DNA from: Lepidodermella squamata
Taxonomy: Eukaryota; Animalia; Gastrotricha
DNA length: 64,000 nucleotides
Assembly: GCA_047495785.1 (NCBI GenBank)
Contig: JBLDXI010000025.1
Span: 1,240,001-1,304,000 of the forward strand
Direction of reading: 5' to 3'
Shown here: positions 1,105 through 57,892 of the stretch, one piece after another
Position numbering within the stretch: position 1 is the stretch's first letter
How the letters are laid out: the number at the start of each line of letters is the position of its first letter
Notes under the pieces: generated by a model
What the model was told of the DNA's origin: nothing
Seen by the model: the letters and a program-made list of their open reading frames with translations, nothing else
The model's database searches: none
Made by a program: the position numbers and the translations under genes

Positions 1105-3543
1105 ATGAAAAATCCGTGCGCCATGATAATTTTCATTCTTTGGGCAGTTATCCATTCCACCAATGCGGCCATTCAAAAGCCGTATCGACTGAATCTGCCG
1201 CAAATTTTCCTCCTTTCCGCCGCTACGCCTGATTACGGAACTTCCTGTAAAGCTTCGTCTGAGATGGTCGTAGATATGTACAACAACCGAAGCGACTTAC
1301 TCCCGGACTACCATGTCGTCTCGAAGTTTACCGATGAACAGCAAGGAACACTGACGGCTCGTCGAGTTGCGGAATACATTCGTTCTTTGGAGGAAACCGA
1401 AGAAGGTAACTACAACTCACCTCTAATCCTTGGCGGGGCTTACTCCGGCGGCATAACTCGAGCTGTTCCGATGCTGAAACCAATGAATTTGATCGAACTG
1501 TGTTTCACATGCAGCGCTCCTTACCTGGCTGATCACTCGAAATACCCAAACTTGTGGCTGATGTTCGCTGGTGCAGACGTAATGGCTATGTCGATGGTTA
1601 AATTCACTGGGCAGGTCGGTAAATGGAAGCGGCTAGGAATCCTTACAACCCCGACTAATCCTTACGACTACGTAACAGCTTTTTGGATCCAGAAAATCGC
1701 ACTGGAAAGCAAAATCGAAGTCCCTGTCTATAACATTCGGCTAGACTTCGGGGACGATGCAGTCAAGTCGTTACTCGATCAGGACGTAAGGATTGCGGTG
1801 ATTCTCACCACTGATATCGACGCAGCTTGGCAATTCTTCTGCGCAGCTCATCGACTTGGAATGACAGGGGACAAGTACGTCTTCATGTTCGATCTAACAA
1901 TCTTCGTAGAGCCATCCCTAGTCCCAGAACAAGTTTTACCCGGTTGCCCACGTCAGTTCATCCTGGATCAATATGCGATATCATTCTGGGTTCTGCCAGC
2001 TCTCTACAGCATGAATCCGCAAGGGAGAAGTGAACTGGGTTACAATGCCTACGAGTTCGATACTATGCTTGCGAGTTACATGGCTGAAAGAAAGATGCCA
2101 GTCTCCGCAGACTATGAATTCCGATTCGTATGCCATGATACGGCCCTCAAAGCTCTGTACGCACTCGATGATGCTGATAGAAAGTTGAAGAAGCAAGGAC
2201 TGAGTCTTCGTGACTATAAGAGATTGCCTGAGGTAGTCGCGAAAGCTGTTAACAGCTCTCTAGCAACAAATCTAGTCCAAGGGCTGAGAATCGGGCCGAT
2301 GAAGTACAGCGCTAGGGGCCAGACTGACGATGAACCTCAGGTTATAGTCTATTACGATGGTAAACAGTTGGTGCAGAGTTTCGTCCAGAAAATGTACTTC
2401 AACGCGACGAAATTTGTGTATGACTCATTCTATCTCAGCGAGATGGCTCCATTTAAATGGCCCGGTTGGCATGGTAGAATTCCGAGGGACTCGACAATTT
2501 CAAAAACTGAAATCTCCGAAGTTTCAAACGAAATTTTCAAAGCTGTTGTAATCATTTCTATTCTGCTGTCTATTTTCTGCACTGCTGGTTTGATTTTTAC
2601 TGGGTATAATGTTTGGAGGTCAAACCGAGGGGTTTTACTCACATTGCCATTTTCGAAAATACTTGGCTATGTATCTTGCATTATGCTCAACGGAACCGCT
2701 GTTGCTTATGCAGCTAACACAAACCAAAAGTATTATCTGATGTCTGTTGTAAGATTAAGCTTGCTGGTCTTGAGTTTGTCTCTCTTAATTGGAATGATCT
2801 CAATGAGGGCTATCATTTACTCAAGAATGATCGATCAGCTCACATATGTTGCCCCTAGAGGTGTATCACGAGTTCTATCCAGCGGCAGGCCGTCGTCTCA
2901 TCTTTCGACTAATTCAGCCCGTAGAGAACTGACAACGGCATCAGCTAGAACCCTGGATCTCTACTCATCTATTTGGGGCTTGGCTTTTTACGGCGTAAAC
3001 ATCCTTATCCTGGTCATATGGCTTACTGCTGACAAATTAGCTTGCTCGATGGTTCAGATCAATAACGGGCCGGTGTATCAGCCTGAGACTGACACGTTCT
3101 TGCTCACTGTGGTCGGTTCCTGCACTTCGACTAATCATACAGCTTGGGTTGTGGCTTTAGCTTTACTACAGCTGCTTCTTCTCGCCGTTGCTGGATTGTC
3201 GTTCTATCAGTTCAAAACACAGAAGCTGAGAATCCGAGGCGTTAGCGGGTTGTTTGATCTGTCGCTTTGTGTCGCGAATTCATCGACAATTTTATTGGGG
3301 GTGATACTTATAGTTTTGGTAATTCGAGACCCAGTTAGTCAGCAAGTTGTTGTTGCATTCGTGAGTCTCACGCTATCAGCTGTTTCAAATGTTACATGGT
3401 TAATTCCCCATTTGCGAACGATCAAAATAAGAATTCGCATCGTGTCAAATAGTACTGCACTGCCCGACTTGCAGCTAGCGCATATTCAAAGCTCGAGAAA
3501 TCGGGAGAGTGCCTCTCGCACGAACTCTTCTGCGGGGCAGTAG
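1105..3543 (+). CDS. Class C GPCR, GABA-B-like (VFT + 7TM), single exon
   Basis: 812 aa; signal peptide, D(L/I)LPDY, SPLILG, LADxxxYPN motifs of ANF/Venus flytrap domain, seven hydrophobic segments, no Cys-rich domain. Confidence 0.9.
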   Translation: MKNPCAMIIFILWAVIHSTNAAIQKPYRLNLPQIFLLSAATPDYGTSCKASSEMVVDMYNNRSDLLPDYHVVSKFTDEQQGTLTARRVAEYIRSLEETEEGNYNSPLILGGAYSGGITRAVPMLKPMNLIELCFTCSAPYLADHSKYPNLWLMFAGADVMAMSMVKFTGQVGKWKRLGILTTPTNPYDYVTAFWIQKIALESKIEVPVYNIRLDFGDDAVKSLLDQDVRIAVILTTDIDAAWQFFCAAHRLGMTGDKYVFMFDLTIFVEPSLVPEQVLPGCPRQFILDQYAISFWVLPALYSMNPQGRSELGYNAYEFDTMLASYMAERKMPVSADYEFRFVCHDTALKALYALDDADRKLKKQGLSLRDYKRLPEVVAKAVNSSLATNLVQGLRIGPMKYSARGQTDDEPQVIVYYDGKQLVQSFVQKMYFNATKFVYDSFYLSEMAPFKWPGWHGRIPRDSTISKTEISEVSNEIFKAVVIISILLSIFCTAGLIFTGYNVWRSNRGVLLTLPFSKILGYVSCIMLNGTAVAYAANTNQKYYLMSVVRLSLLVLSLSLLIGMISMRAIIYSRMIDQLTYVAPRGVSRVLSSGRPSSHLSTNSARRELTTASARTLDLYSSIWGLAFYGVNILILVIWLTADKLACSMVQINNGPVYQPETDTFLLTVVGSCTSTNHTAWVVALALLQLLLLAVAGLSFYQFKTQKLRIRGVSGLFDLSLCVANSSTILLGVILIVLVIRDPVSQQVVVAFVSLTLSAVSNVTWLIPHLRTIKIRIRIVSNSTALPDLQLAHIQSSRNRESASRTNSSAGQ

Positions 3544-4366
3544 ACTAATGTTAACGTGATACAAGTACATAAATATCAGGTTTACATGTTTTACGTCTGA
3601 ATCTGATATCGATTATAATTATAATTCCCTAATCGATACGATAATATCACTGAATAAATCATTCTAGTAACGAAAGGTCAACGTGCGACGGTCATACAGG
3701 GCTCAGGAAGAACCTTGGTGCAACTTCCACAGCGAAAGAAATTCCTAGACGGCTATTGAATCAATCAATACAGCATACCGTTGTTTGGGACGAGTTGGGC
3801 AGTGAAAAAAAATTACCCCCTTATTTTATTGCATATTTACACGTTTCCAAGGGTCCTGATTCCGAAAATTCATGTATCTCAATTCGCCCCAGGTATGTGG
3901 CAAATTGGGCAGGTGTTTTGGGGCGAATTGGGCAGCTTAATCTTTATAAATTGCTAATGAATAAAAGTATCTTGCGATTGTTGAGTGGTCGATTTCTGGC
4001 TTTCCTCCAGACTGTCCTAAGTGGTCGGAGGACGTTTAAAAGGTTTCCATAATTAAATAGACTAATTAAACCAAAATACCAATTCGCCCCCATATATGAT
4101 TTTTCCATGGGGCAATTTGGGCGCAATTACCTGGCCATACCTGTGCATCGCCTCGAGTCGCAGTTTTCTCCCCTGATATCACCAAAGGAAATGGTCGAGG
4201 GAAAAAATGTCATCTGAACTCAAAGCCTTTCGATTGGTTACAGATAATTCAATTCATATGGTTCGTTTTTACCCGCCTAAACTTACTGGCTTACCGCCTA
4301 AATACTGGCTTGCCGTGGCCTCATTCTGGGACATAACTGGCGATTACTGGCATTTTTACAGATGTA

Positions 4367-14875: not shown

Positions 14876-17693
14876 ATGAAGAAAAGCAAGGTTATACTTT
14901 TTCTGTCAGCGATTTTTACTTGTTGTGATTCGATGAAGCCCAACAACATGAGCCTTCTTCAAATTTACAAATTTTCTGGATTCACTCCTGGATACGGCAA
15001 TTCCTGTCGCGCTACTGCGGAACTTGTAATCGATATCGTGAATAATAGAGCTGATTTTCTGGCTGATTACAACATAATCCCTGTTTTCAAGGACGAAGTT
15101 ATGGGCAGAAATACCGCTCGAGAGGTTGCTCTATACTCGCAATCTACATGAGACGTACCAGGACGCAGCGGCTTCGAAGCTCCCGTTATCCGGGTTTGCG
15201 TAAAAAATCACGTGACGTGTTTAGCATAAGTGTGCATAATAATTACTTTCGATGGCAAATTTTTTATTTAATATAAAATTAATTTGCCATCGAAAATAAA
15301 AATTATAATTGATAACAAAATAACCGATCTTTTCGCGACCCCGCCGTTTTCTTTAAGATCTAGATCTTCAGGCCACTGCAAAAAACTGATCTTTGCGTAA
15401 ATACGTGATTTTCATGAATGAGATTTTTTGCTGGTCGTAGAAGAAAAATAACGACCGCTACTAATGAGGTTATTTTTAGCCACAACGACCTTTGGACCTT
15501 ATTAAAAAATAACACAAAAATCAGGCATCTAAATCGAGGCGCCGCGTCCTGGTACGTCTCATGGCAATCTATGGATGAGCACTCTGGCACTTACTACTCC
15601 CCAATAATTCTGGGCAGTGCAATTTCTTCCGGTGTAGTGAGAAGCGCCCCACTGTTGAAGCCGCTGAACCTTATTCAAATGTGTTACACATGCAGCGCTA
15701 CTTACCTTGCAGACCATACTAAGTATCCCAACTTATGGCTAACAATCGCTGGAGGTGATGTTATGGCAATGGCTATCGTCAAGTTTATCAAACAAGTTGG
15801 TCGCTGGAAAAGGATAGGAATCCTTACTTCTCCTAACAACCCTTACGACTACGTTACAGCCTCATGGGTACTCAAAATCGCATTGGAGAGCAACATCTCA
15901 GTGCCCGCCTTTGACATCAGATTGGACTTGGGGGCTGAAGCGGCTCAGTCATTCCTAGATCAGGACATTCGAATCATTGTCGTTATGACTACTGGGACTG
16001 ATTCGACCTGGCAGTTTTTCTGCGCGGCTTACAAACTTGGAATGTATGGCAGCAGGTACGTCTTTATGTTTGACTTCACTTTATATCTCGCTCCAGAGCT
16101 CTTGGCTGAACTCGTCTTACCTGGTTGTCCCAAGCGTGTTATTACCGAGCAATACAAATCCTCGATATGGTTCATGTCTGCTATTCGCAATTTTGACGCT
16201 GATGAAAAGTCCGACTTGGGTTATTCCGCTGTCGAATTCGATGAATTTTTAGATGACTACATGAAAGAACGGTATCCCGATCCCAAGAGTATGATCTAAG
16301 AAGAATCTGCCATGATACCACCCTGAAAGCTCTTTACGCGCTTGATAAGGCCGACGAAAAGCTGAAAATACGCGGCCTGTCACTCAAGGATTACTTGAAG
16401 TATCCAGAAATTATTTCGAAGGCAGTGAATGAATCAATCTCGAATTCAGTTGTAAACGGCCTTCGAATGGGACGAATGCAATATAGTGAACGGGGCCAAG
16501 TCGACGATGATCAGCTGGTTGTTATGTATGTCGATCCGAAGAAGGGCGTCCTGAACCATTTCCTACAAAAGAAGTACAAAAACGCGACCAATTTCAAGGA
16601 AGATTCCTTTTTCCTTCAAGCTTTGACACCTTACAATTGGGAAGGCTGGAAAGGCGTTGCTCCTCGAGATGCTAGGATTTACGAATCAGTTTCCGTGGAA
16701 GTTTCCACTAAGAGATTTGCGGCTATTTCAAGTCTTTGCATTTTGGCTTCAATCTTTGATGTTACGGTTCTGGTCGGTTTTTTGCTGCGGTATTTGAACC
16801 CAGCCATTCCATGTTACCAGAGCATGGCCATTACGAACATTCTTGGACTGTTTTCTTGCGTTATTCTCAACTCTTCATCGATTGCTTTTGCAGCTGAGGG
16901 GCGAGACCACGCCGAAATATTTGAAGTAAGAACTTCATTGCTGGTTATAGGGCTCAGTCTTCTGAACGGGGCAATCTCATTCAACGCCGTGTTTACCTAC
17001 AGGCTTGCTGTGCATTTCGTGACTATCAGAATTCCTTATATTCCTTCGGACACCGCCGCCGATCCTATAGCTGATAGACGAGGACTTTGCGTCAAATTAG
17101 GTAGATCTCATGATAAGAAAGCTTTGGCTTGCTCTCTCAGCTGTACCGCCTGCGCTTTGGCGATCCTTATTATGTGGTTTATTATTGACCCGCTTAAATG
17201 TTCCGAAGAAGTTATTTCTGGGGGCGAGTTTTATGACCAGCGTTTGGACACTCTCTTCAAAATGCTTTACACTAAGTGCGTTTCTGTCAATCAGGCTGCT
17301 TGGGTTTGGTCACTAATTGCAGTCCATCTGATCGTCCTAGGCTTTGGATCCGTGTCTTACTATAGGTTGAAGAGATTAGCTGTCAACAATCTGAAGGACG
17401 AGGTTTTGAATGACATACCGATCAATCTTGTTCTTTCGATCTCCATGTTGGTTGCAACTTCGCTTATCGTGATTATTTTGAAGGATCCTATAAGCCAAAG
17501 ATTGGTCATAGCCTCGTCTTGCTTTTTGCAATCTGCAGTTGTTTCTGCAACTTGGTTTTACTCTGCTATGAAAGAGACACAGAAGGTGAAATGCAGTAGC
17601 AGTGAAAGCGTTTCGGTCGCGGTTGCTACTTCAGGGCAAGGGATGTCTAAACTGCCGAATAACAGAAAAACATTTTCGCTGCGAATTCGTTGA
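14876..17693 (+). pseudogene. Disrupted class C GPCR paralog (MITE insertion + frameshift)
   Basis: Three ORF pieces reconstruct a full paralog: removing 15147-15571 restores YSQSMDEHSGTYYSP; a frameshift near 16273-16280 (8 nt where paralogs have 12) precedes SQEYDLRRICHD. Confidence 0.88.
15147..15563. mobile_element. 417-bp non-autonomous DNA transposon (MITE), CATG termini, 8-bp TSD (P-element-like)
   Basis: TIR CATGAGACGTACCAGGACGC (20 bp perfect, extends imperfectly); TSD GCAATCTA at 15139-15146 and 15564-15571. Confidence 0.92.
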
Positions 17694-18311
17694 GAAAGTC
17701 GAATAATGTGACATAATGATGATAGAATAAACCAATTGAATCTGTTGAAGGAGGCTGAAGGGTCTTATAGAATAATAGAAAAACATTGAGTCAACTATTT
17801 TGTAAAAACAATAACGTGTATTATCCGGAAATTCTATTTCTGGAAAGTAGTCGACGCGGGTTCATGTCATTTCAAGTCACTTGTGGCAAGCTTTCTTCCT
17901 GACGAGGGCACAGCTCAAAGTATAACGTCTGCTGAAAATTGGCCTAGTACAGGGGCAGCTGAAGTTTCTCAAAGCCAAACTGTGAACTCATTAAACGTGG
18001 TGGATTGCACCATCGGACTACTATATGCAATATGTTTTTTGCAGGAATAATATTTTCTTTTCAAGCTTGGGTTCCATGCGTGCAGACACCCGGTTTTGCG
18101 GCATCGCCTTTTTTCGTTTTTCTCAGTCGATTAGGTCGGAATACAAATTTCTTATTATTCATAACAAGCGCCGTCTCTACACGTAGCATTGTTTAATCAG
18201 CCGGGCCGAAGGGCACAAGGAGATGGTATTAGGGCGATCTCATCATTCGTCCTATTTCGAAAAGCAAGGATATTTTCATTTTAACAAATTAATATTTTCA
18301 TCACCGAGATA

Positions 18312-19071
18312 ATGAAGGCACCTATTGTGATCGCTATATTGGTAAGATAGCCCACTCTTAATAACGCTCTCTAGCCACGTTTTCTCACAGGCCATTGTGA
18401 CTCTCATCGCCGAGGGAAACCCGGTTTCGACAAGCCGTCAGGATGCCGCAAACCCTGAGGGTTCCCGTCAGGATGCTGCAAACCCTGAGGGTTCCCGTCA
18501 AGATGCCGCAAACCCTGAGGGTTCCCGTCAGGATGCTGCAAACCCTGAGGGTTCCCGTCAAGATGCCGCAAACCCTGAGGGTTCCCGTCAGGATGCCGCA
18601 AACCCTGAGGGTTCCCGTCAAGATGCCGCAAACCCTGAGGGTTCCCGTCAAGATGCCGCAAACCCCGAGGGTTCCCGTCAGGATGCCGCAAACCCTGAGG
18701 GATCCCGTCAAGATGCTGCAAACCCTGAGGGTTCCCGTCAAGATGCCGCAAACCCTGAGGGATCCCGTCAAGATGCCGCAAACCCTGAGGGTTCCCGTCA
18801 GGATGCCGCAAACCCTGAGGGTTCCCGTCAGGATGCCGCAAACCCTGAGGGTTCCCGTCAGGATGCCGCAAACCCTGAGGGATCCCGTCAAGATGCTGCA
18901 AACCCTGAGGGTTCCCGTCAGGATGCTGCAAACCCTGAGGGATCCCGTCAGGATGCCGCAAACCCTGAGGGTTCCCGTCAGGATGCCGCAAACCCTGAGG
19001 GTTCCCGTCAGGATGCCGCAAACCCTGAGGTTTCCCGTCAGGATGCTGCAAATTCTGAAATCTCTCGCTAA
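18312..19071 (+). CDS. Secreted repetitive protein / candidate peptide precursor: signal peptide + 21 x QDAANPEGSR-type units; exons 18312-18341 and 18391-19071
   Basis: ATG 18312 MKAPIVIAIL, gtaag donor 18342, ttttctcacag acceptor 18390 (49-bp intron, phase 0) joining to AIVTLIAEG-NPVSTSR; variants in the first 19 units are all synonymous; AATAAA at 19200. Confidence 0.82.
18435..19052 (+). repeat. 30-bp tandem repeat, ~21 copies (coding minisatellite)
   Basis: Unit CCGTCAGGATGCCGCAAACCCTGAGGGTTC with variants at four third-codon positions. Confidence 0.97.
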
Positions 19072-20019
19072 GATACCCGGATAATTCCCGCCGACAGTAG
19101 AGTGAGTGAATGTTCATACGCGACAGGAATCTGGGAACGTTCCTTTCATGATATCCCACTATATCTCTTTTCGTAGGTTGAAAGAAGTTCCCATCATGGA
19201 ATAAAGCAAAACAAATTTTCAATTTGGTCATTTTTGAAAATATAACCAAGTCGTTGTGTAATAGCGGTTCTTAGTGTTTTATTTTTTTGAGATGGCTTTC
19301 TAAATCAAATATGAAAGGTCACCGTGAAAATGATAATGCAGAACCAAGAACATTGATTACAGTTTACATAGGGATTAATATATTAGCAGAGCTTGATAAT
19401 ACGTTCTAACCTGAGAAGCACATATTTTCATACACCCCATATATTCCACTCAATCGTTGCCGTAGCAGTTTAGCTTCCGTGCCTGTCCATTATTACGATC
19501 TTCCGCTGTTACATCGGATTTGACTTTTATTACGAACTCGAACTTTTAGTTGATTAATGAATATAAGATACAAAATATTATATGAATGCGATGAGGCCGC
19601 TCGATGAGCATTTAGCGCCTGTTCAAACATAGATAGATGCCAAAACTGCCCCAGCGTTTTTTGTGGCCTAGAGTATCGCCACTCTAAGAGAATAACAACA
19701 GCTGAAGATGCAATGACGCCTAAAACTTCAAGTCAAAAATAATATTAGAAAATTCTTATATATTTGCTGCATTGTAATACAACAGGCAAAGCATTGTCAT
19801 ATATGCATTGTCTTCTGTACATTGCCGGAAAAAAACCGGAAAAAACATAAGAGCGCACATATTATGACGACATAGAACCGCACTTTCGCGGCATGTAATT
19901 ACGCGCGAAAGATGTTGAAGGCACGAAAAATAGTAAAATACTGTTTACCCTCCTTTACAGCCGTATCGTGTATGAGTATCAAGTCTCCTGAGCCGTTATG
20001 GCAACTTATGAATCATGAA

Positions 20020-20092
20020 GGGGGATTAGCTCAAATGGTAGAGCGCTCGCTTAGCATGCGAGAGGTAACGGGATCGACGCCCGTATCCTCCA
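20020..20092 (+). tRNA. tRNA-Ala (AGC)
   Basis: GGGGGATTAGCTCAAATGGTAGAGCGCTCGCTTAGCATGCGAGAGGT...GGATCGACGCCCGTATCCTCCA; anticodon arm CTCGC-TT-AGC-AT-GCGAG; followed by T-run terminator. Confidence 0.97.
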
Positions 20093-20205
20093 ATTTTTTT
20101 TTTTTTTTAATTTTTTTTTAAATAATAATTTCACGTCTTTTTTCATTTATATCAATTGGTTCGCACCTAATGACGGCATAACACAAAAGGTCGATGGCTT
20201 GAGGT

Positions 20206-20783
20206 TTAAGAAGAAATTCTGTGAACCATGCCATCTCTTGCCCTGAGCCATATTAGCGAAATGAATTTTCCTCTTTGTGTCAATATGTGCACGAGGTTGA
20301 TAAACGTAGCAAATGTTGACAAGACTGCGTATAGGGACGACACAGATCTCTTCGCTAGAACTGAGCTTGCAAACAAGATGACTGCAGACGCTGAGGTGAC
20401 CAACACTACATTTATCGCGCATTCCCGATGTAGGTCGCTGTTCAGACGGCTAAAGCTAGAAATCTGACTCGAAGTAAGGTCCTTGAGAGAGTCACGATTC
20501 CTATGGCTAGCATTTGATATCCGGCTTGGACTAATGTCCTTCAGAGAGACACAAGTCACTCGAGGTCGAGGTTTCTTGGCAGTCTTCCACTTTTGCAATG
20601 TCAAAAATCCCAGAAAAATAGCTATGAATGTCAGAATTACTAATAAGCTGATTTCAACCAGTAATAGCGCGTTGTTCGTTCCAACGCCACATGATAAAAA
20701 AAGATTTTCCAGGAAAGTATCAGTGTCTTGAGAGTAAGACTGCGATACAATGACGATTGATTCAAGCATTGATCCCGAAAAAA
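20206..20783 (-). pseudogene. Duplicated 3' fragment (ECL2 to C-terminus) of the GPCR at 22353-24827
   Basis: Matches 22353-22930; truncated at the duplication junction. Confidence 0.85.
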
Positions 20784-20786
20784 CGA

Positions 20787-21218
20787 GGTTCCCGTCAAGA
20801 TGCCGCAAACCCCGAGGGTTCCCGTCAGGATGCCGCAAACCCTGAGGGATCCCGTCAAGATGCTGCAAACCCTGAGGGTTCCCGTCAAGATGCCGCAAAC
20901 CCTGAGGGATCCCGTCAAGATGCCGCAAACCCTGAGGGTTCCCGTCAGGATGCCGCAAACCCTGAGGGTTCCCGTCAGGATGCCGCAAACCCTGAGGGTT
21001 CCCGTCAGGATGCCGCAAACCCTGAGGGATCCCGTCAAGATGCTGCAAACCCTGAGGGTTCCCGTCAGGATGCTGCAAACCCTGAGGGATCCCGTCAGGA
21101 TGCCGCAAACCCTGAGGGTTCCCGTCAGGATGCCGCAAACCCTGAGGGTTCCCGTCAGGATGCCGCAAACCCTGAGGTTTCCCGTCAGGATGCTGCAAAT
21201 TCTGAAATCTCTCGCTAA
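20787..21218 (+). pseudogene. 5'-truncated duplicate of the QDAANPEGSR repeat gene (14 units, no signal exon)
   Basis: Matches 18640-19071; upstream sequence is GPCR antisense, not the signal-peptide exon. Confidence 0.8.
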
Positions 21219-22166
21219 GATACCCGGATAATTCCCGCCGACAGTAGAGTGAGTGAATGTTCATACGCGACAGGAATCTGGGAACGTTCCTTTCATGATA
21301 TCCCACTATATCTCTTTTCGTAGGTTGAAAGAAGTTCCCATCATGGAATAAAGCAAAACAAATTTTCAATTTGGTCATTTTTGAAAATATAACCAAGTCG
21401 TTGTGTAATAGCGGTTCTTAGTGTTTTATTTTTTTGAGATGGCTTTCTAAATCAAATATGAAAGGTCACCGTGAAAATGATAATGCAGAACCAAGAACAT
21501 TGATTACAGTTTACATAGGGATTAATATATTAGCAGAGCTTGATAATACGTTCTAACCTGAGAAGCACATATTTTCATACACCCCATATATTCCACTCAA
21601 TCGTTGCCGTAGCAGTTTAGCTTCCGTGCCTGTCCATTATTACGATCTTCCGCTGTTACATCGGATTTGACTTTTATTACGAACTCGAACTTTTAGTTGA
21701 TTAATGAATATAAGATACAAAATATTATATGAATGCGATGAGGCCGCTCGATGAGCATTTAGCGCCTGTTCAAACATAGATAGATGCCAAAACTGCCCCA
21801 GCGTTTTTTGTGGCCTAGAGTATCGCCACTCTAAGAGAATAACAACAGCTGAAGATGCAATGACGCCTAAAACTTCAAGTCAAAAATAATATTAGAAAAT
21901 TCTTATATATTTGCTGCATTGTAATACAACAGGCAAAGCATTGTCATATATGCATTGTCTTCTGTACATTGCCGGAAAAAAACCGGAAAAAACATAAGAG
22001 CGCACATATTATGACGACATAGAACCGCACTTTCGCGGCATGTAATTACGCGCGAAAGATGTTGAAGGCACGAAAAATAGTAAAATACTGTTTACCCTCC
22101 TTTACAGCCGTATCGTGTATGAGTATCAAGTCTCCTGAGCCGTTATGGCAACTTATGAATCATGAA

Positions 22167-22239
22167 GGGGGATTAGCTCAAATGGTAGAGCGCTCGCTTA
22201 GCATGCGAGAGGTAACGGGATCGACGCCCGTATCCTCCA
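22167..22239 (+). tRNA. tRNA-Ala (AGC), duplicate copy
   Basis: Identical to 20020-20092. Confidence 0.97.
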
Positions 22240-22352
22240 ATTTTTTTTTTTTTTTAATTTTTTTTTAAATAATAATTTCACGTCTTTTTTCATTTATATC
22301 AATTGGTTCGCACCTAATGACGGCATAACACAAAAGGTCGATGGCTTGAGGT

Positions 22353-24827
22353 TTAAGAAGAAATTCTGTGAACCATGCCATCTCTTGCCCTGAGCCATAT
22401 TAGCGAAATGAATTTTCCTCTTTGTGTCAATATGTGCACGAGGTTGATAAACGTAGCAAATGTTGACAAGACTGCGTATAGGGACGACACAGATCTCTTC
22501 GCTAGAACTGAGCTTGCAAACAAGATGACTGCAGACGCTGAGGTGACCAACACTACATTTATCGCGCATTCCCGATGTAGGTCGCTGTTCAGACGGCTAA
22601 AGCTAGAAATCTGACTCGAAGTAAGGTCCTTGAGAGAGTCACGATTCCTATGGCTAGCATTTGATATCCGGCTTGGACTAATGTCCTTCAGAGAGACACA
22701 AGTCACTCGAGGTCGAGGTTTCTTGGCAGTCTTCCACTTTTGCAATGTCAAAAATCCCAGAAAAATAGCTATGAATGTCAGAATTACTAATAAGCTGATT
22801 TCAACCAGTAATAGCGCGTTGTTCGTTCCAACGCCACATGATAAAAAAAGATTTTCCAGGAAAGTATCAGTGTCTTGAGAGTAAGACTGCGATACAATGA
22901 CGATTGATTCAAGCATTGATCCCGAAAAAATGCCAGCCATAACAATGCTGAACGAAGTCGAATTCAATATAATGAGTACAGACAGACATTTGTAAATGCT
23001 GTAACCCATGTCCATGGCCATTCCAAAAGCTAGAGAACTCATCAGAAGCCCGTATCCAGTTGAGATCAGGACAGACAGTGATTGGCAATAGGCATTTGCG
23101 TATGCGGTATCAAAACTTGTTGGAAACGTCAGTGCAGCTATTGTTATCAAGCAACAAGCCACCGCTTGCATGGCCAGCGTCAATCTTCTTCGACGGCTGT
23201 TCGCATCAATTTTCAGAGCTAATAGCTCAATTAGAATGAGCACTGCAGCTGAAATGCCAGTAAAACTGCTACCAACAGCGAGAGCATTTGTCGACAGAGA
23301 AGCCTCGAATCTGTGAAAATTCGGCTCACTTTTAGGAGGCAACCTTTCCTTATTTGACCATTCGAAGCTTTCAAGGAAGACGAAACTGCCATCAGCCCGT
23401 CTTTTCATGGCTAACCTTCTCGACCGGCCTTGTATTTGCTCGACGACGATCTGTGGAGTTAAAGACACCAAAGTACCAGGTAAATAGCCCATTCTACCGA
23501 AAAGCCCGGTGGAATTTTGACCGACTGTTAATTTCCTCACTAATTCGACCAGGCTGTTTTGCTTCCCAATGTCTGAGATAACGTTCCTCAGTGTCTCGTT
23601 AACTGCGTTTAGAGCTAATTCTGTGTCGTGAAGAATGCGAGCAGCGGCATGAGCCATGTCGTGGCAAATAAGCCTCCAACCATAACAGGCAATGTAATCC
23701 CATTCGGAACTTTCGAACGAAGAATCTCATTAAACTTGCCATATGTGACTCCTGTGTCGCTTTTTGACTCGGGAGAAAGCGAAATGCCAGAGTAGTCACC
23801 GCCTAAGAAAATAGCTCTCTCAGCGAACTCATCAGTCATTGTTTTAGTGCAGCCTCCAGGTCGAAGAATCCCAGGGGAGAGCAAGTCAACTGCACTGTTG
23901 AAGATCCATACGATCCTGGGGCCGAAAAGACCCTTGGAATAAGCCTGTGGCAAAATAAGGGACTGTTATCATGATATGGTTTCTTTAAAATCCTTTACCG
24001 AACAGGCAATAATAGGACAGGAATTGACATAGCAGCTCGCGAATATAATCCTAACATCAGCTGCCTTTAGTCTGTCAATCGATTCGCTAGGATCTGTAAT
24101 GAAAAATTCCTCTTTCGAAATATCCAATCCACCTCGTTGCGCGATATTCATAAAGTAGATCGAATCCTGAAAATAATTTGATTAACCAAACCAAAAAATC
24201 CTTAAAAAGGCTCACCGAGTATTGAAACTGGACCAAGTCAGAAAGAATCTCCAGCTTTGTCCAATTGAAGAACCTGATAACCTGAAAACGGGTTTCTGAT
24301 AATTCGCTGTTGGATGGGGCGAATCTGTAGAAATTCGGGTTAATCCGACGGTCGTCCAAACTGATGTCTGTGCAAGCGCCCGATATATCGATGTATCCAA
24401 AGTATTGTGCAAACCTTGCCGTAGCTTTGCACGTGGCAGAGCAAATTCCACCTAAAAATAGCGGGGCGGTAAATGCTAGTTTATTGCTAGTAGTTGATGC
24501 GACTGGAATGTTCACGCCGAGCGATTCATTAAGATAACTAGCCGGGCTGTAATTACGGAAGATAGCGATAGCTTTTTTGAGGCCCACCGAATCGAGGCAC
24601 TCGTCATCGCTTACATCTAGCACCAAGTTGTAGTTCGGTAAAATATCCTTATTTGAATTTACCGCATTCAGCGCGATTTCTATTGATTCCGTGCACAACG
24701 GTCCCATTGGTTGTATGAATCCACCTAAAGGCGCCATCATTGGAACTTTCAGGGTAAAGGGCTTCGACCAGGGTTGACCAGATACTTCGGATATTATCAG
24801 CATCGCGATCCAACTTGAAATGGCCAT
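22353..24827 (-). CDS. Divergent GABA-B-like class C GPCR, three exons (24827-24216, 24166-23999, 23944-22353), with an apparent frameshift near 23700 (pseudogene or assembly error)
   Basis: Signal peptide, DILPNYNL, DDEC, GGICS, NPNFYR; 49- and 54-bp GT-AG introns join QYS|DSIY and IACS|AYSK in phase 0; the frame switches from SKVPNG to DYIACYGWRLICHD. Confidence 0.8.
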
Positions 24828-26576: not shown

Positions 26577-27754
26577 ATGAAACATATATTCTCTGCTCTA
26601 TTTTACATGTTCACAGTTTCGACATCAGTTAACGCTGAGGTAAGTCCTTCAAATCAACACTTTGATGATTCAAAGCTTTAGAAAGCTGAACGCGCGGATC
26701 GAAACATGAACATTTGAAATTCCAGTGCTACAGTCTGCCAAACGTAGCGAATGCGTTGTTGACAAGATATCCAGAGTCAGCCGACTACCCGTATGAGGAT
26801 GGTACAACGTTTATAATTGAATGCAACTCTGGATATCGGCTGGTTGGGAATAATTACATATCCTGTCACTACGGTGACTATGATGCAGTTCCACAGTGTA
26901 TCCAAAGAGGGGCGAATAGATCGGATGGGGTTGCGAATAGATTGGATGGGAGCATGAGCAGATCGGATGGGAGTGCGAATAATAGATCGGTAAGCTGCAT
27001 AACTCTACAGCATGATTATTTTGATCCAATTTTTCTCAGTGTTACTCACTGCCAATCATTCTGAACGCTGACGTGACGAGATATCAGGCCTCGGGAAATT
27101 TCCCGTATGAACATGGAGCAATCTATACCGTTACCTGCCAGATTGGATATTATCTCAGCGGCAACTCATTCGTCAAATGTCAAGACGGAACATGGCGCTC
27201 CGTTCCGGAATGCATCAGATCTACTACAAGTTCCTCTCCGCCTTCTACAACACCTCAACCGCTTTTTACCGGAAGACTTTCATGTGCTAAATGCACAGAT
27301 TGCAAAGATTCCGTGGGACGTATTTCGGAATGCGCGGATGATACATTTTCATATTGCCGCATCGTTGTTGTCAAAGGAGTTGTCAACATGCGCGATTGCG
27401 TGATAACCTGCAATGAGAGTAAGTTGGAACTAAAACACCACCGATTAATTCGATTTATACTGAATATCACCTCCAGCATACCTATTCTTGGCTGGGTCGA
27501 ACTCTCAAGCGCCTACCATAGGTTACAATAACCTGTCGGTTGGCAATTCTGTAACGGTTAGCGTATATGATTTCTATGAAACGAAATGCTGCCAGTCGAA
27601 TGGATGTAATGTCGCCGCGAATGTAAAAGCTTTGCGGCGTATTGAGCTTACATTTATGGCCCTTCTTCTCGCGACTAAGACGATAGATTTAATGACTGGA
27701 CATTGGAAAAGTTGGATATTCAGCGTTTACAACGTTTACAACTTACTCGAATAA
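26577..27754 (+). CDS. Signal peptide + 2 sushi/CCP domains + S/T/P linker + LU (Ly6/uPAR three-finger) domain + hydrophobic tail; exons 26577-26639, 26726-26989, 27040-27418, 27477-27754
   Basis: GT-AG introns keep frame; CCP motifs C...ECNSGYRLVG...C..G...PQC and TCQIGYYLSG...CQDGTW...PEC; 10-Cys LU ending CCQSNGCN. Confidence 0.85.
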
Positions 27755-40730: not shown

Positions 40731-43587
40731 CTATGTATTATTCCATTTTGCTATGTTTTCGAGTTTTTCAGCCTTCACTGAAACCGGCAGCAGCAAAAGG
40801 AAGCTCATGATCGCAGAATAGACGAGTTCGATGAAAGCCAATACTGCGTTGAACACGCACGGCTTGTTGGACGAAGCGACCAACGCAAAGATAATCACGC
40901 CAGCAGCAAGCATCGTCAGTGCATTCACTGCAGCTGCCCGGAATAGCTTGCAACTCAGCGCTAACTCGATGGGCATTATCCGCCGTCTCAGATCAACAGA
41001 ATACAGATTCGCAAGCGAAATCAGTACCAAATTGAAAGAAAGAATCGCGCCAAGCCAATAGTTCGAATTTGCTGAGTTGCAGGACATAAGACTAAGCTCG
41101 AAGTAAGTATCCGCTTTCTCATCAAAGGCAGCAGGATTGTGGGTCAAAACAAGTTGCATAGGTTCTTTGATGAACCAAACAAGAATGAACCCAAGGTTGA
41201 TTGACATGGTCGAAATGAGTGATTGTGAAATCTGAAGTTCGTTATTCTGTTTGTCACTTTGAAGAGTAGATACGTATCTTTGGTTCACTATTCCTTTTCT
41301 TTCATACAACAAGCTGCTCGGTTGATCATTCGAGGATATCTTTAACTTCGCGAGATTGTTAATGTAACGAATAGCTCGATTATAAACGCGGTAGGTTCTC
41401 ACTCGAACGAACTTGCTGTAGACTAAAAGTTGACTGAAAATTAGGCAGTGAAACATACTTAGGCTTATCGATATGAACACTAATCTCCATCCGCATTCCG
41501 TTGCTGGAGAGAAATCATGACCAATTATTGAGAAAATTGCTGACGCGTTCAAGCTTAAACAGGCGGAGAAAACGAAGCACTTCTTCCAATTGATGTAAAA
41601 CGTCTCTGGTTTTGCTAGAGTTGCTCCGAAGAGCAGAAGGCTCTGGACTAGAGTTAGTAAAACAGAAAAGCAAGGAACAGCGACGTTGAGTACACTGCCG
41701 CAGTACCCGATCCTCTGCTCGATAATAGACAAATCCTTGGGAGAGAGGCCGGTTTTTGTATTCCATACGGGTACAGCATCAAGCTGAAACGAATATGACC
41801 GGTTTTCGTGATGGTACTTGAGATGAGCCACTCTTCGAAGTTTCAAGTTGTAGGCTTGCATTATCGATAGGTCTTGATACATCTCACCGTTAACATCTCG
41901 CTTAATTCTCGGATTGCGAAACCCAACAGCCTCGAGTTTCGCTGCTTCTCGATTAGCTATGCTGTAAATCAAGGCCCTATATCTGATCTCTTTGAAATTA
42001 GCAAGGGAAAGGTTGAAGTCTTGATTTAGAACAGCCTCGGTTTTGTTTAGGACCAGTAGTGTGAACATTTGAGAGTCGTGATGGGTGTAGCGAACGCTGT
42101 AACTCCCAGAAATATCTGCGACCTGAGCCATTTTCGAGGTAACTCGTTTGTCGTATTCGGTAGGGCTCATACCAAGGCTCGACAGAGCTGGCATATCAAA
42201 AGAAGTTGTCGGAATGCCGATTGCAAACGTCGCCGACAACTGTATGTCAAGTATTTGCCTGGTACATCCATCTGATATGTAGGCGTCTCGATCTAGGTTC
42301 CAAGTCAAGCATGCCGGAATGGAGACGATAAATTGATACAGCGGAGGTCTTATGCCATTGTGATAGGCTTTGCATAGCAAAATCTGGCACTCATAAGCTC
42401 CGTATGGAAAAACAAGCACTACTCTGACATTTAGTAGGGGCTGTAGATCGGCATCATCCAACTCTTCGAACCAATAGGAACCAACAGACTCGCCAACTTC
42501 GATGTTGTTCGCCGTTAGCAACTTGAAGGTGTCACTAACTAGCATAGGAATGTCACGAAGCCACCACGAATATATAATACCGACCCGTTTCCATCCACCA
42601 ACACTCCGAACAGCCTCGAGAAACGCGTATTTGTACGTGTTCACGGAACCTAGTGTTGTATAGAGGTTGTTGAAGAATTTAGATCTTCGAGATTCGATGA
42701 AAGGCCCAGCGCAGCTTTGCGTTACCTGAATGAAAATTTGACATGAAATGAACATAGTTCAACACGATGGAGACATAGTCGACTCGAAAAAAACCATGTC
42801 TTGAACCTACTGAACCCTGTATGAGTGGTCATGTACAGTTCGTGTGGTATATGGGGGTCTATTCAAAGCAACTACGGCGCGCTTATGTCGACTGAAGTTG
42901 TCTTATACTTGCTGAGATTGGTGAGATGCAACCTCTTTCTCGTTTGATTCAATCCTTCAAAGTTATTTGACTGATCTTAAAATAGAAAAACTCTAAAGAT
43001 AACTCCTAATCAGCAAAAAATGTTTATTCGCTTATCAAAAATGAGTAGGGTGGGGAAGAACGAACACGTGGTCATTTTAATACTATTTTTGGCTTAAACG
43101 TTGATCTTTGCGATGCGTGCTTAATTCAGCCTGGCTATTAGGCTATTAAGCTATTATACCCTGTAACCTGTATGAGCAACCTAAATTTTAGGGACTTTTT
43201 TATCTTGCTGGCGGAAGAGATGAAAAGTGAGCCTTTTACCATGACCATGTTGATGCCACGATACGTACCAGCGCTTGTGTCGCAGTCTCCATCTGGTCCT
43301 GTAAGAACAGGCGCTAAGCAAGAGTCGCCAGGCAACTCCAACTCCAACAGCTCCCTCGCGTATCTGTTGCCAGAATCTTCGTCAGTAACAATCAGAGGAT
43401 ATGGAACTATTTCGAAGTTTGCTAATAAACTCGACGCGTCATTTACGTATTCAGCAAGGGCGTAAACACTGGCATTGGTTATATCTGATCCGCTAACCAT
43501 GGCTGGCCACAGCAGCTTTGGTCTAGCAGCTTCGCTAGACGCCAAGAGCATCGTTGCAAGTAACAATATTGCGAAAACCACAGGCAT
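40731..43587 (-). CDS. Highly divergent class C GPCR-like gene, two exons (43587-43240, 42725-40731)
   Basis: MPVVFAILLL signal peptide, LLANFEI, APVLTGP; 514-bp GT-AG intron joins NMVM|VTQSC; GWKRVGII, CKAYHNGI, 7TM with TM3 CGWR. Confidence 0.82.
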
Positions 43588-45270: not shown

Positions 45271-45631
45271 TCCGTTCTCTATGGAAAAATTCGGAACTTA
45301 CCATGATTTCCTCAAAATTATTTGGGCATATGATCATTATCACAAATCGCATAAATTTGGGTAATATGCATTCTTCACTATATTTTCAGACTTTCAGACT
45401 AGTTCAGTTTATTACGATAAGAAATGCCATGATGAGACAAACAACGCGCGCTGGCAAGCAATTTCGGCCATATCTAGTACTTTGAAAGACATCGATCAGG
45501 TCACGAAATGAGGGGTGAAATTTTGAAGCCTGTGCACGTAGCAAAACGAAACAGCCAATTATTTGAGTATACATATAGACACACGAAAACGATTTCGAAT
45601 GGAGTTAACAAAGATTGTTGTTCCTTTTTCA

Positions 45632-48013
45632 ATGAAATTCTGGTCGACTTTGATTGCATTCTCAAGCCTAGTCATGGCTTGCTGTGCCATCAAACCGTAC
45701 AATATGACCCTAATGCAAATTTTTCTGTTCTCAGGCATAACGCCTGGCTACGGAAACGTCTGCCGAGCTTCTGCCGAAATAGTCATCGATCTTGTGAATC
45801 GAAGAAACGACATTCTGCCAGATTATAACATCATCTCCGATTTCGAGGACGAAATGGTGGGGAAAAACGTAGCTCGATTGGTTGCAATGTATTCTCAATC
45901 AGTTCTCGACTCGGCAGGTCCGATGTATTACTCTCCTCTGATTCTTGGCAGTGCCATGTCTTCCGGGGTCGCTAGAAGTGCCCCGCTTTTCAAACCGCTC
46001 AATTTAATTCAAATGTGCTACTCCTGTAGTGCTGCTTACCTAGCAGACCATTTAAAATATCCCAATCTGTGGCTCACATGGTCGACTGGGGATCTTTCAG
46101 CAATGTCTATTGTTACATTTATTGCCAAAGTCGGAAACTGGAAACGTATCGGGATTCTCACGTCTCCGTTGAATTCCTACGACTACTCCACGGCTACTTG
46201 GATTCTGAAAATCGCCATGGAGGCCAAAATAGAAGTTCCTGTATTCAATATTCGGCTTGAATTTGACGAAGAATCTGTAGCGCCGTTTCTAGATCACGAT
46301 TTGAGAATACTTTCTGTCGCGAATACGCATACGGAGGACGTTTGGAAGTTTTACTGTATGGCTTACAAGAAAGGAATACGGGGACCGAAATATGTCTTTT
46401 TCCTTGACTCAGTCAGCTACCTAGAGGCTAAACTTCTCCCCGAAGAAATAATTCCAGGCTGTCATAAGAGCGTCGTGATTGAACAATATCAAAACGTTAT
46501 CTGGTTTTCATCGGCCCTACAAAATCTCGATCCGACCCAGAAATCTGAGCTCGGCTACGATTCGGTAGAATTCGACCGAATGCTTGATCGCTACATGTCC
46601 GATCGAAACATCTCGAAATCGCAAGACTATGCTGGATTCAGAACAACATGCCACGACACGACTCTCAAAGGCATAATTTCCTTACATAATGCTGATAAAA
46701 AACTTCAGAAATTAGGAATGTCGCTGAGAGACTATAGGAATTATTCAGAAATCGTCGCAAAAGTGGTGAACGATTCTGTTGCGACATCGAGAGTGGCTGG
46801 AATCCGAATCGGGCCTATGCAGTACAGCGACAGAGGACAGGTTGATGACGATCAGTTGGTTGTTATGTATCTGGATCCGAAGAAGGGATTGCTGAATCAC
46901 TACGCTCTAAAACGCTTCCGAAACTCCACAACATTCAGCGTTGAATCCTTCTATTTTGATAAGCTGGTGCCATTCAAATGGGTGGCTTGGAATGGGGTCC
47001 CTCGAGATTCTATGATTTTCACGGCTATAACTGCTGACGTTAGTTTATCTGGCCTCATAGCGATCGCGATCATTTGTTCCCTAGTTGCCCTGATTGATGT
47101 ATTGGGACTGATCTTCATTTGCTTGAGACATTCAGCATTATGCTGTGCTTTACCGATTTCCAAGGCCATAGGATTGATTGCTTGTATTCTCATAAATATT
47201 ACAGCGATCCTTAACGCTGCTGGAAATGATTCAAAACCTCTGACCTTTTCAAATCTAAGGATAGTTTTCATCGTTATCGGCTTGAGTCTGTTTAACGGGT
47301 CGATCGGACTTCGATCAATGTCACCATCTCGAATTTTCGAAATTGCCCACAGTTCTCCAACGCAAAAGACCAGGTACAAACTTACGGCAACTGCAAGCCA
47401 TGCTAAGGGCCAAGTAACTCTGCAACAGCTCAAATATGTCGATTTATTCATTGCTAAAGCCACCCTCAGTTTAGCTTTGATTTTTGTAGTCATCGTCATA
47501 ATTTGGTTAACTAGCGATCCACTCCTATGTAAAACGGAAGTAATGGGAGGAGTTCCGGTTTATCAGTCAACTTCGGACACATTTCTGAAAACTTTCGTAA
47601 CGAGCTGCGCATCTTCAAATCATACTATTTGGGCATCTGTGCTGATCTTCGTCAATTTGATCTTCTTAATTGTAGCCGCGATTTCTTATTACCAGTTTAA
47701 GCAAAGAAAGCTTAACATCCCAGCCCTAGACAGCTTGATTGATATCCCAATCAATCTTATGATATCGATATCGGTATATTTGGCTGCTGCCCTAATTATT
47801 CTGATCTTGAGAGATCCTATCAGTCAGCGGCTTGTTATTGCTATTGCATGCCTGATCTTATCAGCGGCTTCAACTGCTGCATGGCTGATTCCTCATTTTT
47901 CAAGTATCGATTTAAGCGAAAATTCCCCGATGGACATTATCGTGATTAGCAAGGTTCGAAATGACCACTCAAAGTTCTCAGAGTTGGGGGGTGACGGGAA
48001 ACATTCGACATGA
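45632..48013 (+). CDS. Class C GPCR, GABA-B-like, single exon
   Basis: ORF 45563-48013; probable ATG 45632 (MKFWSTLIAF); family motifs and 7TM. Confidence 0.9.
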   Translation: MKFWSTLIAFSSLVMACCAIKPYNMTLMQIFLFSGITPGYGNVCRASAEIVIDLVNRRNDILPDYNIISDFEDEMVGKNVARLVAMYSQSVLDSAGPMYYSPLILGSAMSSGVARSAPLFKPLNLIQMCYSCSAAYLADHLKYPNLWLTWSTGDLSAMSIVTFIAKVGNWKRIGILTSPLNSYDYSTATWILKIAMEAKIEVPVFNIRLEFDEESVAPFLDHDLRILSVANTHTEDVWKFYCMAYKKGIRGPKYVFFLDSVSYLEAKLLPEEIIPGCHKSVVIEQYQNVIWFSSALQNLDPTQKSELGYDSVEFDRMLDRYMSDRNISKSQDYAGFRTTCHDTTLKGIISLHNADKKLQKLGMSLRDYRNYSEIVAKVVNDSVATSRVAGIRIGPMQYSDRGQVDDDQLVVMYLDPKKGLLNHYALKRFRNSTTFSVESFYFDKLVPFKWVAWNGVPRDSMIFTAITADVSLSGLIAIAIICSLVALIDVLGLIFICLRHSALCCALPISKAIGLIACILINITAILNAAGNDSKPLTFSNLRIVFIVIGLSLFNGSIGLRSMSPSRIFEIAHSSPTQKTRYKLTATASHAKGQVTLQQLKYVDLFIAKATLSLALIFVVIVIIWLTSDPLLCKTEVMGGVPVYQSTSDTFLKTFVTSCASSNHTIWASVLIFVNLIFLIVAAISYYQFKQRKLNIPALDSLIDIPINLMISISVYLAAALIILILRDPISQRLVIAIACLILSAASTAAWLIPHFSSIDLSENSPMDIIVISKVRNDHSKFSELGGDGKHST

Positions 48014-48060: not shown

Positions 48061-48636
48061 CTAATTATTAGCTTTGTCAGCTTGCTGGCACACGTTCTTG
48101 TAAAAATTCGCATCTGCCGCAATTTTCCTTAGCAATTTGACGAGATTGCGATGCTGACGATAAAACTCAGCATCGGGCGGGGGCTGGGCATTGCGCATTC
48201 CAAGCGTCACATTACCGATGATTGCTTGCCACCGCCTCGAAGCGACCTCCTCCGCTGGATTTCGCCCTAACGCTAATGACGCCGAGTACTGCAGAAGATT
48301 GGCTTTCACGCAAAGAGCAGATTGAATTTTACGGCAGTTCTTAACGAGCCCAGACGAAGCGAATGACATATAGAACGTGACGTTATCGTGTTGCTGTTGA
48401 TGTTGATCGTCGCAAAATCGGGTTCGTAAAATGTGCCCTGTCATCAGGGCAACAATTTTGTCCTGCACTCTGTTATGTTTCTTCGTAACCTTATGGTGCG
48501 CTCGTTCAACATAATGCTGGTAATCTCGGGTTTGACCAACTGCATTCACTGGAACTAGTTCTATCTCTACAAAAGTTAACTTAGCGCTTGCTAATTCGCT
48601 AAAGATGAATGCTGAAATTATAAAATGGAAATACAT
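48061..48636 (-). CDS. Small secreted 4-Cys family member 1 (subgroup A)
   Basis: Signal peptide; LRTRFC...CRKIQSALCVKA...ADANFYKNVC. Confidence 0.85.
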   Translation of the reverse strand: MYFHFIISAFIFSELASAKLTFVEIELVPVNAVGQTRDYQHYVERAHHKVTKKHNRVQDKIVALMTGHILRTRFCDDQHQQQHDNVTFYMSFASSGLVKNCRKIQSALCVKANLLQYSASLALGRNPAEEVASRRWQAIIGNVTLGMRNAQPPPDAEFYRQHRNLVKLLRKIAADANFYKNVCQQADKANN

Positions 48637-48672
48637 TTTTTTGGAAAAATGACTAGTTTATTAGCTCGACTG

Positions 48673-49212
48673 TCACTGATTGTTTGCTTGTTGACACACA
48701 AGTCGGAATAAACGAGCGTCATTTACGAGATTGCGCCACAATTTGATGAGGTTGCTCCTGTTTTTGCCGGCGTCATTTGCGGCCTTAATTGACTCGCGCG
48801 ATGCAAAATAGTGCAGGACATTCGACTTCATGCAGAGGGCATCTCGCTTCTGGCTGCATCGTCGGTTAAGCTCGGACGCCGCCAAATTAGCCGGGACGAA
48901 AGCTTTTTCCAGTTTCAGGTCGCAGAACTTGCCGCGGAAGTAGGCGGCGCTGAGGATGACCGTTCTGACGTTTGCATCTTCCTTTGCAGTAGCCAGGTCT
49001 TGCTCCGGCAGAGTGCACGGTGACTCTTGACTAGATTCCTTATTTTCAGCAACCATTGGAGTTGCGAGTTTGTTTTCGATAAGTTCTCGACCCATGTCGC
49101 CCGCCACTTTCTCCAGCTCTCCAAACCGTAATTTCTCAGGGGCTTCATTTGCGGAACAACTCGCCAGCAGAAGATGGCAGACAGTTAGTAGCTTTATTAG
49201 ACCTTTTCGCAT
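48673..49212 (-). CDS. Small secreted 4-Cys family member 2 (A)
   Basis: Signal peptide; AAYFRGKFC...CSQKRDALCMKS...NDARLFRLVC. Confidence 0.85.
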   Translation of the reverse strand: MRKGLIKLLTVCHLLLASCSANEAPEKLRFGELEKVAGDMGRELIENKLATPMVAENKESSQESPCTLPEQDLATAKEDANVRTVILSAAYFRGKFCDLKLEKAFVPANLAASELNRRCSQKRDALCMKSNVLHYFASRESIKAANDAGKNRSNLIKLWRNLVNDARLFRLVCQQANNQ

Positions 49213-51488: not shown

Positions 51489-51878
51489 TCATAGAAGGCA
51501 CAATTCATTGAAAAGCTTCCAATCAGAACGGAATGTATCTTCCAATCTAAGTAACTCCTTCGCTTGTTTCTTCTGCATTGCTGCAAAATGCATGATGGAG
51601 GCTTTCGCACACATCATGGATCGAAAATTGAAGCAGATGCTCGATCGATTGATAGCGCTTCCATATTTCTGCATACAGTTTTTCAACCTGAATTCATTCG
51701 CGACAATCTGAGCAGAATTTTTCTCGGGGGCGTTGTAAGTTGAATCACTAAGCGTTTTGATCGACTCGGGAGGGTAGCCATCGCCTACTGCAGCTTGAGT
51801 GAACCCAACGAGAAATTTCAACAAAAAGGCTGAAACAATGAGAGGAGACCAAGTGGAAGCATTGTTAAACTTAGTCAT
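51489..51878 (-). CDS. Small secreted 4-Cys family member 3 (A)
   Basis: Probable ATG 51878; signal peptide; ANEFRLKNC...CFNFRSMMCAKA...SDWKLFNELC. Confidence 0.8.
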   Translation of the reverse strand: MTKFNNASTWSPLIVSAFLLKFLVGFTQAAVGDGYPPESIKTLSDSTYNAPEKNSAQIVANEFRLKNCMQKYGSAINRSSICFNFRSMMCAKASIMHFAAMQKKQAKELLRLEDTFRSDWKLFNELCLL

Positions 51879-52081
51879 AGTTCGAATATATACAGGAAAT
51901 TGCGCCAACCTATTTTTCAGTTTGGGACTGAGGAAGCCTCTTGACTGCCTCTGAATCAATATTTTCGTGCGAGTAAATGAGGTCATCTAGTTATTTTTGA
52001 GGCATATACACTTTATTATACCAGTTACGCCAAAAACAACACAGAAAAACAGCGAAATTAGGCCACAATAAAACACGTGGC

Positions 52082-52681: not shown

Positions 52682-52883
52682 GATTTTTCGACGAAAATAT
52701 TCATAAGGACAAATACGGTCAGTAGTATCACCTCATGTGACGCGAAAACAGGTCATTGTTTACTCAGATCTCACCCGCTGAGAGTGATGCTCCCTGATTT
52801 TTATTTGTGTAATGCAAGCGGGAAGTTTATTCAATGAATTCGAATTAAAAATGAATAAATTCATGTGCGGCTGCGTCTGTTTT

Positions 52884-57785: not shown

Positions 57786-57892
57786 CGTGTTAAATGTACG
57801 TAAGTGAAAACTTTGCTCGTTCTAATTTCAACTGATAACGCTTATCTCGCACATTTTTATTTCTTCAAAAGAACCCCAGCAATCTCTAATAA

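Follow-up and report, generated by a model that had tools for sequence, protein, structure and literature searches.

The region at positions 18312–19071 on the plus strand of the analyzed DNA, a 64,000-nucleotide stretch of the Lepidodermella squamata genome (referred to below as the window), is transcribed and spliced, and almost certainly represents a real two-exon gene. Sequence reading and translation yielded a protein of 236 amino acids, in which a predicted signal peptide is followed by a chain built nearly completely from ten-residue units of the type QDAANPEGSR. The preferred interpretation, to which a probability of roughly 0.5 was assigned for the whole statement including the gene model, is that of a secreted, acidic repeat protein acting whole and uncleaved as an extracellular polyanion.

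Gene Structure and Expression

The ATG at position 18312 is the first AUG of the transcript. It is preceded by a short 5′ untranslated region (18269–18311, plus strand), which was read from the sequence, is covered by a transcript contig, lacks an upstream ATG, and features an A at position −3 of the start codon. The coding part of exon 1 (18312–18341, plus strand, 30 nt) specifies MKAPIVIAIL, representing the first half of the predicted signal peptide, and is separated from exon 2 (18391–19071, plus strand) by a GT..AG intron of phase 0 with a length of 49 nt (18342–18390). Since this intron is bounded by GT and AG on the plus strand, transcription can be assigned to that strand. Exon 2 starts with the remainder of the signal peptide, AIVTLIAEG (18391–18417), for which cleavage was predicted after A-E-G, and closes with a TAA stop codon (19069–19071). 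The resulting 19-residue predicted leader, MKAPIVIAILAIVTLIAEG, is composed of M-K as the n-region, a core of 15 hydrophobic residues, and a terminal A-E-G with small residues at positions −3 and −1 (A-x-G); this heuristic assignment was made by eye and by means of Kyte–Doolittle hydropathy, the nine-residue means reaching up to 3.8. In the original prediction, a hidden exon of 30 nt, a 49-bp GT-AG intron, and a signal peptide were proposed for this region, and their coordinates and frame were reproduced, with the signal peptide resting on the heuristic just described. Absent from that prediction were seven residues, NPVSTSR (18418–18438, plus strand), which were found by translation to separate the leader from the first full unit and form a degenerate partial unit at the N-terminus of the mature chain. 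On the 3′ side, the motif AATAAA at 19200–19205 (plus strand), located approximately 130 nt past the stop codon, was regarded as a likely polyadenylation signal.

To follow the expression of the gene, three public runs with dates of 2014, 2015, and 2024 were matched (designated X1, X2, and X3), and contigs were placed on positions 17500–18480, ending at the start of the array. A contig of 161 nt obtained from X3 (contig 17) matches positions 18268–18340 and 18390–18449 without any mismatch, including the coding part of exon 1, and leaves out 49 nt bounded by GT and AG. It joins 18340/41 to 18390/91, as predicted by the gene model, the shorter of the two flanking matches comprising 60 letters. 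The exact 18341/18391 junction, whose absence from transcripts had been named as grounds for rejecting the prediction, is thus present in this contig. Positions 17500–18258, where the upstream receptor gene ends and intergenic DNA follows, are without coverage in X3. Because this upstream intergenic DNA is left uncovered, X3 behaves as RNA and was evidently obtained from RNA, as far as can be guessed from its coverage. In the DNA run X1, the whole placed stretch is covered, the intron included, with approximately 1% differences from the window, and a synonymous G>A substitution was found at 18329 in exon 1. As further observations on the runs, X1 (organism A) provided two haplotype contigs at 17611–17720, and a single X1 contig spanning 17691–18470 showed 8 substitutions, one insertion of 10 nt, and one deletion of 2 nt relative to the window. 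In X3 (labelled organism B), agreement with the window was complete; accordingly, the window may derive from the strain or label of X3 rather than from that of X1.

Approximately 28 of the 161 letters of the X3 contig are located 5′ of position 18268 and were not placed on the genomic stretch. Based on these letters and on the AG at 18267–18268 (plus strand), just upstream of the start of the contig match, the mRNA is probably trans-spliced to a spliced leader at this putative acceptor site. Such an apparent trans-splice site directly before a short 5′ UTR is also relevant for the completeness of the gene model, since it speaks against the assumption that the array is only one exon of a larger gene featuring further downstream coding exons, or reading through into the duplicate described below, so that the 236-aa model would be incomplete. 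This alternative can draw on the facts that reads were placed on the 5′ part only and that the 3′ end was deduced from the stop codon and the AATAAA motif. It is nevertheless considered quite improbable, because the loose contig ends of X1 and X2 remain colinear beyond a variant last unit and the stop codon, reaching shared letters of the 3′ flank, and because the next downstream gene is encoded on the opposite strand.

Sequence Variation within the Repeat Array

Applying Tandem Repeats Finder, the array was located at 18435–19052 with a period of 30, 20.6 copies, 94% matches, and a score of 1096. Listing of the units in codon register from position 18439 resulted in 21 units of 30 nt each (18439–19068, plus strand), namely 19 QDAANPEGSR units followed by QDAANPEVSR and QDAANSEISR, which agrees with the originally described 19 exact and two variant terminal units. 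Variable sites within the 19 core units are restricted to unit positions 3, 9, 18, and 24, all of them being third codon positions and synonymous, and the 8 distinct DNA units observed specify one peptide unit, QDAANPEGSR. In contrast, translation of the array in its three other open frames results in 8, 5, and 8 different units at the peptide level, and the final two frames are interrupted by stops. The statement that the four polymorphic sites are synonymous in the frame of the gene but amino-acid-changing elsewhere was accordingly borne out. Open reading frames on the opposite strand and in other frames (of the LRHPDGNPQG and MPQTLRVPVR types) were also considered as coding candidates; they were rejected in view of the GT..AG intron on the plus strand and of the variable sites, which change amino acids in these frames.

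In the signal-peptide frame, 22 of the 90 single-nucleotide changes that the consensus unit allows leave the peptide unaltered, and the chance of observing four synonymous changes by substitution amounts to 0.244^4 = 0.0036. The chance of four random sites all being located at third positions is 0.0077. A fifth synonymous variant, GCA>GCG, was detected in the public runs X1 and X3. Changes of amino acids are limited to the two end units of the array, the last of which varies by sample (QDAGNSETSR in X1, X2, and X3 versus QDAANSEISR in the window). For poorly homogenized array edges, such a pattern is expected, and a homogenized middle combined with decaying edges and selection on the peptide corresponds to the usual picture for arrays of this kind. 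Protein-level constraint on the unit, as claimed at the outset, is supported by the synonymous-only variation at the four sites (chance between 0.004 and 0.008).

It was also considered that the array might be a transcribed minisatellite without protein function, for which the frame, the leader, and the splice would be incidental and the likeness of the units would result from recent expansion. Homogenization by unequal exchange can mimic conservation without selection, four of the six frames run through the array without a stop codon, the protein is without relatives in the searches reported below, and the locus is very dynamic, as indicated by an exact duplication. Yet four independent variant sites (five with the reads) are synonymous in exactly the frame spliced behind the signal peptide, and this frame alone has a single peptide unit. 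Moreover, the start context, the lack of an upstream AUG, the stop codon, and the AATAAA motif together constitute a complete gene. Scanning of the 64-kb window for the degenerate 30-mer revealed 33 units compared to 0 expected from shuffles, and all 33 are located within two arrays; hence, the dispersal that would be characteristic of a satellite is not seen in the window. Likewise, the summed depth over the unit in the DNA of X1 (approximately 2500–4100, compared to approximately 65 in flanking single-copy DNA) exceeds the single-copy value by a factor of approximately 40–60, a rough figure, as such sums are not copy numbers, which suggests some tens of units and not thousands. A minisatellite without protein function is therefore considered improbable: the variation depends on the frame, and the array resides within a spliced transcript, neither of which would be expected of a non-coding repeat.

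Tandem Duplication and Second Array

The exact duplication mentioned above comprises 2144 bp in tandem and, like the second array contained in it, was not part of the original prediction. Its first copy (18640–20783) starts within the array, of which the 3′ two-thirds are included, and extends across the 3′ UTR and intergenic DNA into a class C GPCR-like gene on the minus strand, taking in the 3′ end of that gene. Sequence comparison placed a 3-nt filler, CGA, at the junction (20784–20786), followed by the second copy (20787–22930), which is 100% identical over 2144 bp. At the junction, mid-array sequence is fused to mid-exon sequence of the convergent class C GPCR-like gene. One intact copy of each gene is found on the outside, represented by the repeat gene (18312–19071, plus strand) and the receptor gene (approximately 22353–24827, minus strand), and two truncated copies are located inside.

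The 5′-truncated copy of the repeat gene (20787–21218, plus strand) consists of approximately 14 units and a stop codon, with the QDAANPEGSR-coding units of this second array occupying 20787–21199. The sole in-frame start listed for it is a TTG at 20757, which lies inside the GPCR fragment. As neither an ATG nor a signal peptide is present in the repeat frame, the truncated copy is probably dead.

Given the perfect identity of both copies, the duplication has either arisen very recently or represents an artefact of assembly or amplification. The published L. squamata assembly was generated from amplified DNA, which is prone to chimeras (PMC11660948). The filler of 3 nt, as read from the junction sequence, favours a real repair event.

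Properties and Relatives of the Encoded Protein

After removal of the predicted leader, the mature chain comprises 217 residues, with a pI of 4.3, a net charge of approximately −20, and a GRAVY value of −1.7; Cys, aromatic residues, and Lys are missing. Repeat units account for 210 of the 217 mature residues, a dominance of the repeat that is characteristic of secreted disordered tandem-repeat proteins, and each unit harbors one turn-type motif, Asn-Pro-Glu-Gly. AlphaFold2 returned a mean pLDDT of 46 and no secondary structure, a weak indication, as the model was calculated from a single sequence. Together with the GRAVY value and the composition, it points, again weakly, to a low-complexity, disorder-prone chain without a predicted fold, and the mature chain is predicted to be disordered. 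Ser, Thr, and Pro (24, 1, and 21 out of 217 residues, respectively) contribute only approximately 21%, with one Ser per unit, and thus a classical mucin (PTS) domain is not represented.

Searches for related proteins were carried out in several collections. In a word-indexed search covering 5.8 billion proteins and restricted to 0.55–1.75 times the length of the query (124–393 aa), no protein sharing even three five-residue words was retrieved. The phmmer search against 1.84 billion representatives resulted in 1426 hits, of which those inspected were unrelated low-complexity repeats (GPEGTTPGQT, DGGNY, RQEAA, and RQEGS). Since none of the inspected hits featured the QDAANPEGSR unit, their E-values reflect the periodicity of the repeat rather than kinship. 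The best score in the feature search of the ESM Atlas was 0.87 with low recognition, providing nothing usable, and when metagenome contigs were scanned for exact occurrences of the degenerate 30-mer pattern, 0 matches were obtained. Within these collections, the 236-aa protein is an orphan.

Processing Signals

The original prediction interpreted the protein as a multi-copy peptide precursor yielding approximately 19 copies of pQDAANPEGS. According to this interpretation, the chain would be cut after every Arg, the Arg trimmed, and the N-terminal Gln cyclised, resulting in approximately 19 pGlu-DAANPEGS peptides along with variant end peptides, which might serve as a neuropeptide, hormone, or pheromone. 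The architecture agrees with this proposal insofar as a signal peptide is followed by repeated cores (19 identical and two variant ten-residue units) arranged back to back, each starting with Gln and ending with Arg, and as the strict R|Q boundary is what would be expected of a pGlu precursor. The unit is subject to purifying selection, and the perfect conservation of such a short unit would also suit a bioactive peptide; moreover, the gene is expressed.

The signals usually directing the processing of such precursors are, however, missing. Dibasic sites are absent, and according to the classical rules for monobasic cleavage (Devi/Veenstra), a second basic residue is located at P4, P6, or P8. 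In the repeat protein, positions P2–P10 before each Arg are occupied by S, G, E, P, N, A, A, D, and Q, none of which is basic, and the next basic residue is found 10 positions upstream. Peptidomics of spiralians likewise revealed that monobasic sites usually feature a second basic residue 3–6 positions upstream (PMC8557429), and neither a dibasic site nor a monobasic Arg accompanied by such a nearby basic residue was identified. On the other hand, monobasic cleavage as such does occur in spiralians (PMC8557429), and non-canonical processing exists in some animals. As already pointed out in the original prediction, the terminal G-S-R is not a standard amidation signal: no Gly precedes Arg, and the C-terminal Gly serving as amidation donor, which is common though not obligatory in precursors, is lacking. 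Nonapeptides with two acidic residues and a free C-terminus would be released, and such products are atypical among bilaterian neuropeptides; homology to any known neuropeptide family was not found in the collections searched.

Judged by known processing rules, the precursor interpretation is disfavoured. The proposed release of approximately 19 pQDAANPEGS peptides is not favoured by the lone Arg, the absence of dibasic sites, and the lack of Gly-Arg, and ranks second, as a less probable alternative.

Genomic Neighbourhood

The repeat gene lies between two class C GPCR-like genes, which belong to a group of about a dozen such genes located at 1105–48013, mostly represented by single long ORFs of 780–830 aa and mostly encoded on the plus strand. 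A Pfam scan of the large ORFs identified ANF_receptor in nine of them, two of which also matched 7tm_3 (one above and one below the cut-off). Four other large ORFs scanned, including those of the transmembrane half of the convergent receptor, had no family match in Pfam. Amino acids, ions, or sugars are the usual ligands of class C (Venus-flytrap) receptors, which are not typical peptide receptors, peptides usually being bound by receptors of the rhodopsin or secretin types. The class C character of the neighbours thus provides little basis for expecting a peptide to act on the adjacent receptors, and the absence of rhodopsin- or secretin-type receptors directly beside the gene is a further point against a peptide precursor.

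Among the other members of the group, the receptor gene at 14876–17693 is broken into three ORFs, due to either introns or decay, and the ORFs at 40731–42755 (minus strand) and 45563–48013 (plus strand) are of receptor-like size without a Pfam family match. A Sushi (complement control) repeat was identified at 27073–27531 (Pfam E = 1e-6), adjoining an ORF in which a short segment is rich in Arg, Ser, Asp, and Gly; the ORFs of this region (26714–27531) probably belong, as exons, to an unrelated protein that is either secreted or membrane-bound. Furthermore, a series of small minus-strand ORFs of 150–200 aa extends over 48061–63443, and the one scanned (48061–48636) was without a Pfam match. The GC content of the window is 42.8%; for the L. 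squamata genome, a value of 43% was published (PMC11660948).

Proposed Role as an Intact Secreted Polyanion

Given the absence of dibasic sites, the lone Arg, the lack of an amidation Gly, and the atypical products, the intact protein was ranked above the precursor. An uncleaved, acidic secreted protein, which had been mentioned in the original prediction as the alternative, fits at least as well as a precursor. For the protein acting as an intact polyanion, the following course may be envisaged. The leader would be removed after AEG, and the mature, acidic, and disordered chain of 217 aa would be exported without being cut by prohormone convertases. The intact chain would then act extracellularly as a polyanion; mucus, the secretion of a gland, and a coat on the surface or cuticle are conceivable settings. 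At the level of the gene, the array would grow, shrink, and homogenize by unequal exchange, while selection would purge amino acid changes in the inner units and tolerate them in the end units.

The net charge of approximately −20 would make the secreted chain a candidate de-adhesive. It is conceivable by analogy, although very far from probable, that the polyanionic product, either whole or in the form of acidic nonapeptides, represents the releasing secretion of duo-gland adhesive organs, by means of which gastrotrichs also attach and release. For the detachment of the flatworm Macrostomum lignano, a small, negatively charged secreted molecule, still unidentified, was proposed to neutralize a Lys/Arg-rich glue protein (PMC6410801), and gastrotrichs were recovered as sister to flatworms in phylogenomic analysis (PMC11660948).

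Comparison with Known Systems

What looks like a minisatellite is thus an expressed protein-coding gene, found in a genome that lacks annotation and in a phylum that has received little study; standard gene finders combined with repeat masking would probably lose it. Taken alone, the finding represents one orphan gene, and it would be important only if non-canonical monobasic processing or localization in a defined gland proved true.

Similarities to several known systems are apparent. Fungal KEX2-processed repeat proteins (KEPs) and precursors of the yeast alpha-factor type are likewise secreted and made wholly of peptide cores. KEPs are defined by Lys-Arg between the cores (PMC9769878), whereas the mature repeat protein contains no Lys; moreover, KEPs belong to another kingdom. 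With multi-copy pGlu precursors, such as the TRH precursor and those of cnidarians and spiralians, the protein shares a signal peptide and many identical short units starting with Gln after a basic residue. These precursors differ in featuring dibasic or paired-monobasic sites and mostly a Gly donor, compared to a lone Arg per 10 residues and no Gly-Arg in the protein described here. In the searches, they showed no sequence similarity to this gene.

Compared to mucin-like and repeat-antigen proteins, the chain is strongly acidic, lacks an anchoring or adhesive end domain, and shows no homology. Parallels are offered by the secreted, intrinsically disordered tandem-repeat proteins known from invertebrates and parasites, which also possess a signal peptide and a mature chain consisting nearly completely of short perfect repeats, and are restricted to particular lineages. 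The Asn-Pro turn repeats of the Plasmodium circumsporozoite protein may resemble the Asn-Pro turn-type motif of the unit. Arrays of such secreted disordered proteins also evolve by unequal exchange with the peptide unit being kept constant, as is the case for QDAANPEGSR.
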